Positions 23,015-24,328 of a stretch of 64,000 nt of DNA are shown here, in pieces. Source of the stretch: Dimorphilus gyrociliatus (taxonomy: Eukaryota > Animalia > Annelida); the NCBI GenBank assembly GCA_904063045.1, contig CAJFCJ010000003.1, positions 1,674,001 to 1,738,000 on the forward strand, read 5' to 3'. Position numbers and translations under genes: made by a program. The notes under the pieces were generated by a model, which saw only the letters and a program-made list of their open reading frames with translations, was not told the origin of the DNA and did not search any database. Numbering within the stretch: position 1 is the stretch's first letter; each line of letters opens with the position of its first letter.

Positions 23015-24328
23015 ATGGCTGAAAAAGCTTTTGACTCCTGTGTCGATTTTTGGAGATTTAAAAAACTTTTAAAATTCCTAGAATTTGCAAAAGGCAATGG
23101 AACTTCTTTAATAACTCTATTAATTCCTCAAAAAGATCAAATCAGTAGAGTAACAAGAATGTTAGGCGAAGAACTTGGAACAGCATCTAGTATCAAGTCT
23201 AAGCTCAACAGACAATCGGTGGAATCTGCGATAACATCAATTTTACAAAAATTAAAATTATACAAATGTGTGCCTAAAAATGGACTTGTAATATTTTCTG
23301 GAACGGTAATTACTAAAGAAGGAAAAAATAAAAAGCATATTCTAGATTTCGAGCCTACTAAACCAATGTCTGATAAATTATACTTGTGTGATAATAAATT
23401 TTATATAGAACCACTTAAATCAATGTTGCGTGAGGAGGAAAGTTATGGATTTATTATAATAGATGGACAAGGGACCCTATTTGCAAATGTTTCGGGTAAC
23501 GCTCGAACAATACTTCAAAAATTTTCTGCTGGTTTGCCAAAAAAGCATGCAAGAGGTGGCTCATCGGCTGCGAGATTCGGACGCGAGAGATTATTGAAAC
23601 GTCAAGCCTACATTAAGAAGGTTGCAGAAACGGCTAAAGATTGTTTTATAAATGCTGAGCTAAAAGCTAATGTTTCAGGTATTATTGTAGCCGGTAGTGC
23701 AGAATTGAAGACGGATTTAATTAAATATGACCTCTTGGACAATAGGATAAAGGAGAAGATTATTGAAGTTGTGGATATTGAATATGGTGATGTCATAGGC
23801 TTAAATAGAGCTATTGATTTGGCCGCAGAAAAAATTGGTAATTTGCATTTTGTAAAAGAAAAAGCCATCATAAGGAATTTTTTTGATTGTATTCAGCGAG
23901 ATAATGGTAAATATTGCTATGGATGTGAGGATACGATGGAAGCTCTGAAAAAGGGAGCAGTAGAAACTTTGATTTGTTGGGAAGATTTGGAGGTTATGTA
24001 TTTCAAATTAAAAAATTCCAGAGAGGAAATATTCACTACTCATTATTTATCTCCGAGAGAAGCTCAGAATTTAAATATTTTTAAGGATAGTAATACTGGT
24101 TTTCGTTTGGAACTTGTCGAGCAAGAATTATTAGTTGAATATCTGATAGAAAAGTATTCTAAATTTGGAACTGATATGAAAATAATTACTAATGGAACAC
24201 AAGAAGGCAAACAATTTATAGCAGGCTTCGGGGGAATAGGAGGCATACTTCGATATAAAATGTCTTTTTCTAATTCAATAAATGAAGAAAACGAAGAGGA
24301 CTTTAACCTAGATGAATATGATCTGTAA
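23015..24328 (+). CDS. ETF1: Intronless divergent eukaryotic release factor 1 (eRF1) paralog, 437 aa, with GGQ->GGS and NIKS->SIKS
   Basis: Single ORF with all three eRF1 domains: GNGTS, GTASSIKS, LYLCDNKF, LPKKHARGGSSAARF, YVKKVAE-like YIKKVAE, GFGGIGGILRY, and an acidic tail. The symbol names the family; this is probably not the canonical ortholog. Confidence 0.95.
   Translation: MAEKAFDSCVDFWRFKKLLKFLEFAKGNGTSLITLLIPQKDQISRVTRMLGEELGTASSIKSKLNRQSVESAITSILQKLKLYKCVPKNGLVIFSGTVITKEGKNKKHILDFEPTKPMSDKLYLCDNKFYIEPLKSMLREEESYGFIIIDGQGTLFANVSGNARTILQKFSAGLPKKHARGGSSAARFGRERLLKRQAYIKKVAETAKDCFINAELKANVSGIIVAGSAELKTDLIKYDLLDNRIKEKIIEVVDIEYGDVIGLNRAIDLAAEKIGNLHFVKEKAIIRNFFDCIQRDNGKYCYGCEDTMEALKKGAVETLICWEDLEVMYFKLKNSREEIFTTHYLSPREAQNLNIFKDSNTGFRLELVEQELLVEYLIEKYSKFGTDMKIITNGTQEGKQFIAGFGGIGGILRYKMSFSNSINEENEEDFNLDEYDL

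Follow-up and report, generated by a model that had tools for sequence, protein, structure and literature searches.

Does an eRF1 copy whose stop-codon recognition loop has changed read other codons than the canonical factor, read the same codons less well, or serve no function at all? This question is raised by a gene that we found in a window of 64,000 nucleotides (by window we mean the whole stretch of DNA that was analysed) from the annelid Dimorphilus gyrociliatus, in contig CAJFCJ010000003.1 of assembly GCA_904063045.1. The general view is that translation termination in animals relies on a single, invariant eRF1. The gene encodes a paralog of this factor, and the features that define it are the following.

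23015 to 24328, plus strand: intronless open reading frame of the eRF1 paralog, 437 amino acids, ending in a TAA stop (sequence, ORF list, Pfam, RNA contig)
23177 to 23221, plus strand: stop-codon loop GTASSIKSKLNRQSV, human positions 57-71, with the changes N61S, R65K, V66L and L69Q (sequence, alignment)
23189 to 23191, plus strand: AGT, the codon of Ser61 in human numbering, where NIKS has Asn (codon read; same in the RNA contig of run X2)
23555 to 23563, plus strand: GGS, replacing the catalytic GGQ (ORF translation, alignment to human eRF1)

The paralog is encoded in a single 437-codon frame without interruption, along the full length of which the Pfam domains eRF1_1, eRF1_2 and eRF1_3 are recognized in order (E-values from 1.7e-24 to 7e-33; 86.6, 114.2 and 100 bits, all over the curated cut-offs). 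Its alignment to human eRF1 (1dt9; 477 bits, E 3e-142, residues 5-435) runs end to end with one one-residue gap overall and none in the N domain, in which the human position equals the paralog position plus 2. As a reference we took 118 canonical eRF1s, those nearest to the paralog, a set to which the canonical eRF1 of D. gyrociliatus does not belong. The paralog is about 50% identical to canonical eRF1s, which are 75-85% identical to one another, and the N domain is the best kept (57%, with 48-51% in the M domain and 44-45% in the C domain). In its three Pfam domains, its near-gapless alignment and most of its decoding motifs it is thus like canonical eRF1 (human ETF1, yeast Sup45), and it is unlike it in having SIKS (23189-23200) for NIKS and GGS for GGQ. 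The other sequence motifs of an omnipotent class-1 release factor are present, namely GTS, E55, S70, V71, YxCxxxF and, within the sequence GGILRY, the eRF3-binding motif GILRY. Another eRF1-family factor of the A site, Pelota/Dom34, has no GGQ either and does not release peptides; it is devoid of the NIKS and YxCxxxF regions altogether (PMC2613156), and its M-domain tip is shortened. We rejected this identity for the paralog, which has an eRF1-type N domain and the full GG-loop region and matches Pelota weakly, over a partial stretch (E 3e-5).

The first-pass annotation of this DNA had described the loop as a change from TASNIKS to TASSIKS, listing N61S, R65K and V66L. Both the gapless N-domain alignment and the RNA contig confirm that the change is real and the three substitutions correctly placed: the translation of 23177-23215 is G-T-A-S-S-I-K-S-K-L-N-R-Q, followed by S-V up to 23221. 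The AGT codon of Ser61 is one transition away from the Asn codon AAT, and an assembly slip is excluded because the RNA contig of run X2 shows the same codon. Of the 118 canonical eRF1s, 111 have NIKS, 3 have HIKS, 2 have SIKS and 2 have NIKN, and the departure seen in the paralog exceeds chance variation. A few further variants came to light along the way. Three eRF1s on ENA contigs that are roughly 1 Mb long or longer (P0037, P0063, P0090) carry TAAHIKS, with His61 and an intact GGQ, and are 76-80% identical to animal eRF1s. The eRF1 of the bdelloid rotifer Adineta steineri (P0002, 642 aa) has NIRS (K63R), in a gene model that repeats the N domain and part of the M domain, which suggests either a partial duplication in tandem or two models joined into one. 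A protein of 945 aa on a 3 kb Logan contig (P0195) has an eRF1-like C-terminal half with GGS, and DVQR instead of NIKS, and is another release-factor relative with both tips altered.

Expression of the gene was assessed in two sequencing runs, the first of which yielded the following feature.

22901 to 25463, strand unassigned: one unspliced RNA contig of run X2, 2566 nt, containing the whole ORF with 114 nt upstream and 1135 nt downstream (alignment to the genome)

Over this interval the contig shows zero differences from the genome and no splice. That run X2 is RNA follows from the neighbouring minus-strand RRM (TIAR-like) gene, three introns of which (22006-22056, 22154-22220 and 22322-22624; GT..AG) are absent from the contigs of the run. 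The match therefore demonstrates that the paralog is transcribed, that it is intronless and that its Ser codon is present in RNA. The ORF is collinear with the contig, next to a gene that is interrupted by three short introns, and the intronless paralog may well be a retroposed copy. Run X1, a coral metatranscriptome from 2024, is an independent sample in which pieces of the ORF are found at 99-100% identity, covering 459 nt at a depth of 2-3. It differs from the genome at two positions of the paralog, V368I (24116 G>A) and K383E (24161 A>G), both nonsynonymous and both at low depth. The same run holds spliced transcripts that are 99-100% identical to three genes of the window (22217-22800, 23458-24224 and 25813-26288), which means that the worm, or a strain very close to it, lives in the coral sample.

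The surroundings of the gene deserve a brief description. The paralog is transcribed next to the RNA-binding TIAR-like gene, and about 100 nt (22801-22900) separate the first exon of the latter (22625-22800, minus strand) from the start of the RNA contig at 22901, a gap that looks like a shared bidirectional promoter. On the other side, the 1135 nt of the contig beyond the paralog stop (24329-25463) run across a minus-strand ORF (25123-25320) that begins with MGCGLS, a start resembling a myristoylation site. The coverage of this region reflects either a long 3′ UTR or two convergent transcripts that overlap.

What a change at position 61 does to termination can be drawn from mutants of the canonical factor, one of which, human N61S, is the paralog's own substitution. 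In a reconstituted system human N61S retains hardly any release activity at any of the three stops, and its stimulation of the eRF3 GTPase stays at 102% of wild type (PMC3632111), from which it follows that folding and ribosome binding are intact. At the same position, yeast carrying N58A is viable, and within a large collection no mutant is a stronger omnipotent suppressor (PMC2938225); N58K is an omnipotent antisuppressor, with read-through reduced four- to six-fold at each of the three stops (PMC2665212). As these effects are equal across stops, position 61 sets how well, and not which, stop codons are read. In molecular dynamics on cryo-EM complexes, the ribose of U+1 is held by the side chain of Asn61, and base discrimination is ascribed to Lys63, with no part for Asn61 (PMC5681627). 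A reading of cryo-EM models has N61 touching the U1 base (PMC5776981), and on this view some role of Asn61 in base reading is possible. All laboratory mutants (human N61S, N61A and N61D; yeast N58A and N58K) are single changes in a wild-type factor, whereas the paralog has about 215 further differences that may be compensating or additive.

The remainder of the decoding surface was compared with human eRF1 residue by residue, and three more features enter here.

23099 to 23107, plus strand: GTS loop, kept (alignment)
23372 to 23377, plus strand: Asp-Lys at human positions 122-123 (T122D, S123K), just before YxCxxxF (alignment)
23381 to 23401, plus strand: YLCDNKF, the YxCxxxF motif, kept (alignment)

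The alignment bears out the earlier statement that GTS, E55, S70 and YLCDNKF are kept, and V71, the IKS of the loop, N67 and R68 are unchanged too. All known discriminators of the second and third bases of the stop codon are hence retained in the paralog. Kryuchkova 2013 found 15 residues essential for decoding, 12 of which are identical in the paralog, the changes being S36T, N61S and R65K. S36T was neutral in the assay of that study and R65K preserves the charge, which leaves N61S as the only one of the three that is known to be harmful. The Asp-Lys pair is a departure within a known specificity determinant, as 98-100% of canonical eRF1s have Thr-Ser at human 122-123. Positions 122-124 set UGA-only reading, as shown by Stylonychia and by the human QFM mutant (PMC3632111). 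T122D and S123K could by themselves shift the preference between UGA and UAR, and should the paralog have any altered preference, they are at least as good a candidate for it as SIKS.

These data allow us to weigh the possibility that, through its altered loop, the paralog has gained a new codon specificity or a narrower one, in the manner of variant-code ciliates. The first-pass annotation was right to tie NIKS to the first U of the stop codon, and also that the motif is altered in variant-code ciliate eRF1s. Indeed, non-NIK loops were long known from ciliates only, a 2008 survey reporting SIKN and SIQD for Paramecium and SIKN for eRF1-2 of Tetrahymena (PMC2613156). With the SIKD of Paramecium added, these are all Ser61 loops like that of the paralog, and some of the ciliate Ser61 eRF1s are extra paralogs on long branches (PMC2613156). 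The UGA-only eRF1 of Paramecium owes its reading to SIKD and an altered YxCxxxF, which are jointly sufficient and both needed; this and the changes at 122-123, adjoining the known UGA-only determinant, speak for a new specificity. Against it, the paralog keeps YLCDNKF, GTS, E55, S70 and V71, and single changes at position 61 hit all three stops equally. Furthermore, ciliate variant-NIKS eRF1s keep GGQ and have the last residue of the motif and often YxCxxxF changed, unlike the paralog, and their hosts have reassigned stop codons. Of the TAA, TAG and TGA ends that the annotation had seen in the window, TAA and TGA are used as stops of conserved proteins: the paralog and one collagen IV NC1 gene end in TAA, the other NC1 in TGA. 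A variant-code host was rejected on these grounds, since both codons end conserved C-termini, and so was a ciliate-type eRF1, as YLCDNKF and GTS are unchanged, GGQ is lost and only 122-123 differ. We therefore consider a new specificity improbable. The annotation had proposed a changed specificity or affinity of the paralog; the part concerning affinity, or an efficiency that is most likely lowered, is plausible, and that concerning codon specificity finds no support, given the stop-independent effects of mutants, the conserved pocket and the SIKS loop of GGQ-bearing glass-sponge eRF1s described below.

Natural sequences offer a further view of Ser61. Asn occupies position 61 in 108 of 150 diverged representatives of the family, followed by Ser (9), Arg (6), Cys (4) and His (3). 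Ser is the commonest natural substitute for Asn61 (9 of 135 diverged representatives); the named cases are Paramecium (SIQD) and Balamuthia. A word search with the loop alone returned 13 candidates and no new Ser61 protein. In the same representatives N61 is missing in 4 of 6 sequences without GGQ vs 22 of 123 with GGQ (Fisher p = 0.015), a weak link given the small sample, the uncontrolled relatedness and gene models of uncertain quality. The first-pass annotation had left to alignment how often Ser occurs at position 61 in animal eRF1s: SIKS is not common (2 of the 118 canonical eRF1s), yet it appears fixed in one animal class, the glass sponges (Hexactinellida), as the eRF1 loop of two genera, Vazella pourtalesii and Oopsacas minuta (KAI6652895.1; P0098 and P0121), encoded with AGT as in the paralog. 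A SIKS first exon with AGT is also present in host DNA of several sponge samples (L002-L010, for example L004:3001-3300). Unlike the paralog, the glass-sponge proteins keep GGQ and all other motifs, R65, V66, T122 and S123, and they share 77-80% identity with the eRF1s of other animals; judging from their sequences, they look like working orthologues and not like diverged extra copies. In the papers that we consulted they are not mentioned as an exception to the 'invariant' NIKS. In animals, SIKS is hence rare but not unique, and it is compatible with a seemingly ordinary, GGQ-bearing eRF1.

A second residue may be linked to Ser61.

23222 to 23224, plus strand: GAA, encoding Glu at human position 72 (L72E), candidate compensating partner of Ser61 (alignment)

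Leu72 is present in 115 of the 118 canonical eRF1s and in 112 of the 113 that have Asn61, and in both animal cases of Ser61 the residue is polar, Gln in glass sponges and Glu in the paralog. We hypothesize from these two animal events that position 72 compensates for Ser61. Among the diverged representatives, protists included, Gln or Glu at position 72 often accompanies N61 as well, which makes the link between the two positions a loose one. The same facts bear on the possibility that SIKS is neutral in its own context (for example next to Glu72), reads stops approximately as NIKS does, as is presumably the case in glass-sponge eRF1, and leaves GGS as the sole functional change of the paralog. 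Such neutrality would fit the two glass-sponge genera in which SIKS coexists with GGQ and a well conserved sequence, the polar 72 of both animal Ser61 cases and the standing of Ser as the commonest natural alternative. It has to contend with the near inactivity of human N61S in the reconstituted system, it presumes that glass sponges have no eRF1 besides the SIKS protein, and the 61-72 pairing comes from two animal events and is loosened by protists that combine E72 or Q72 with N61. We regard neutrality as rather unlikely, if the most serious competitor of the reading presented below.

Whether the paralog has been maintained is the next point to be settled. Its branch in a maximum-likelihood tree measures 6.0 substitutions per site vs a median terminal branch of 0.06. 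Nevertheless, 105 of the 130 columns that are invariant in the 118 canonical eRF1s are kept (about 81%) and 25 replaced, many of the replacements being conservative, while only 26-34% of variable columns are kept. Furthermore, when neutral evolution of the paralog coding sequence was simulated to 49% protein divergence, none of 3000 replicates was free of stops, and the actual sequence, with 33% G+C, still has its 437-codon frame intact. Since no neutral replicate survives and invariant columns are preferentially kept, we infer from this one sequence that selection has held the frame and the core. Retention of invariant columns is similar across domains (79% in the N domain, 83% and 81% in the other two), so the decoding domain is neither released from selection nor singled out, and N61S is one among many replacements at conserved sites.

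These results weigh against a transcribed retrocopy without function, in which N61S would be a product of decay. The lack of introns, the very long branch, the alteration of both functional tips and the two differences in run X1, both nonsynonymous, are what such a copy would be expected to show, and no ortholog of the paralog was recovered by a word search of 5.8 billion proteins or among 1.84 billion representatives read exhaustively, the best of which reached about 53% identity. Decay would, on the other hand, have to leave an intact frame at this G+C content and divergence, an outcome seen in none of the simulations, spare invariant columns so much more than variable ones (about 30% kept), favour conservative changes and be compatible with transcription in two independent samples. 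We hold it to be very improbable, slightly more so than a new codon specificity. As for the origin of the copy, its branch is too long for the tree to place it, and ten diagnostic sites that separate Metazoa from others are uninformative (1 metazoan, 4 non-metazoan and 5 other states); because neither can place the paralog, we claim no date for the duplication.

Taken with the mutant data, this leads to the reading that we favour and hold to be probable, by a modest measure: the gene encodes an expressed, selectively maintained copy of eRF1 in which stop codons would still be read, N61S would lower the efficiency and not alter the choice of codon, and GGS would impair release. [quoted passage not shown] N61S would be expected to weaken formation of the termination complex on UAA, UAG and UGA alike, and neighbouring changes such as L72E may offset this effect, as perhaps in glass-sponge eRF1. 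Together, N61S and GGS would yield a stop-codon binder that releases peptides poorly.

A known parallel for such a binder is eRF1(AAQ), the catalytically dead trap of termination complexes, which likewise combines a decoding domain with an altered GGQ tip. In eRF1(AAQ) the decoding domain is intact, NIKS included, and the change is an engineered Gly-to-Ala replacement, whereas the paralog keeps both glycines and changes the Gln and the decoding loop. This comparison brings in a more specific version of events, in which the two tips are co-adapted: N61S, buffered by L72E, would tune the hold of the GGS paralog on the codon, making it a regulated competitor of eRF1. The rationale is that a poor releaser that bound as tightly as eRF1 would poison termination, as eRF1(AAQ) does. 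We consider co-adaptation unlikely, though not as unlikely as a new codon specificity.

The finding has several implications for the family. N61S is a known change of efficiency and should not be taken as a marker of recoding, and glass sponges indicate that SIKS can serve in a seemingly ordinary animal eRF1. The proposed compensation of position 61 by position 72 is a concrete hypothesis that can be addressed in human eRF1. If the tips are indeed co-adapted, the paralog would be a termination brake or a read-through or recycling factor in an animal. Finally, an expressed and maintained second copy of eRF1 with both tips off canon would be a natural experiment that separates stop-codon binding from peptide release.
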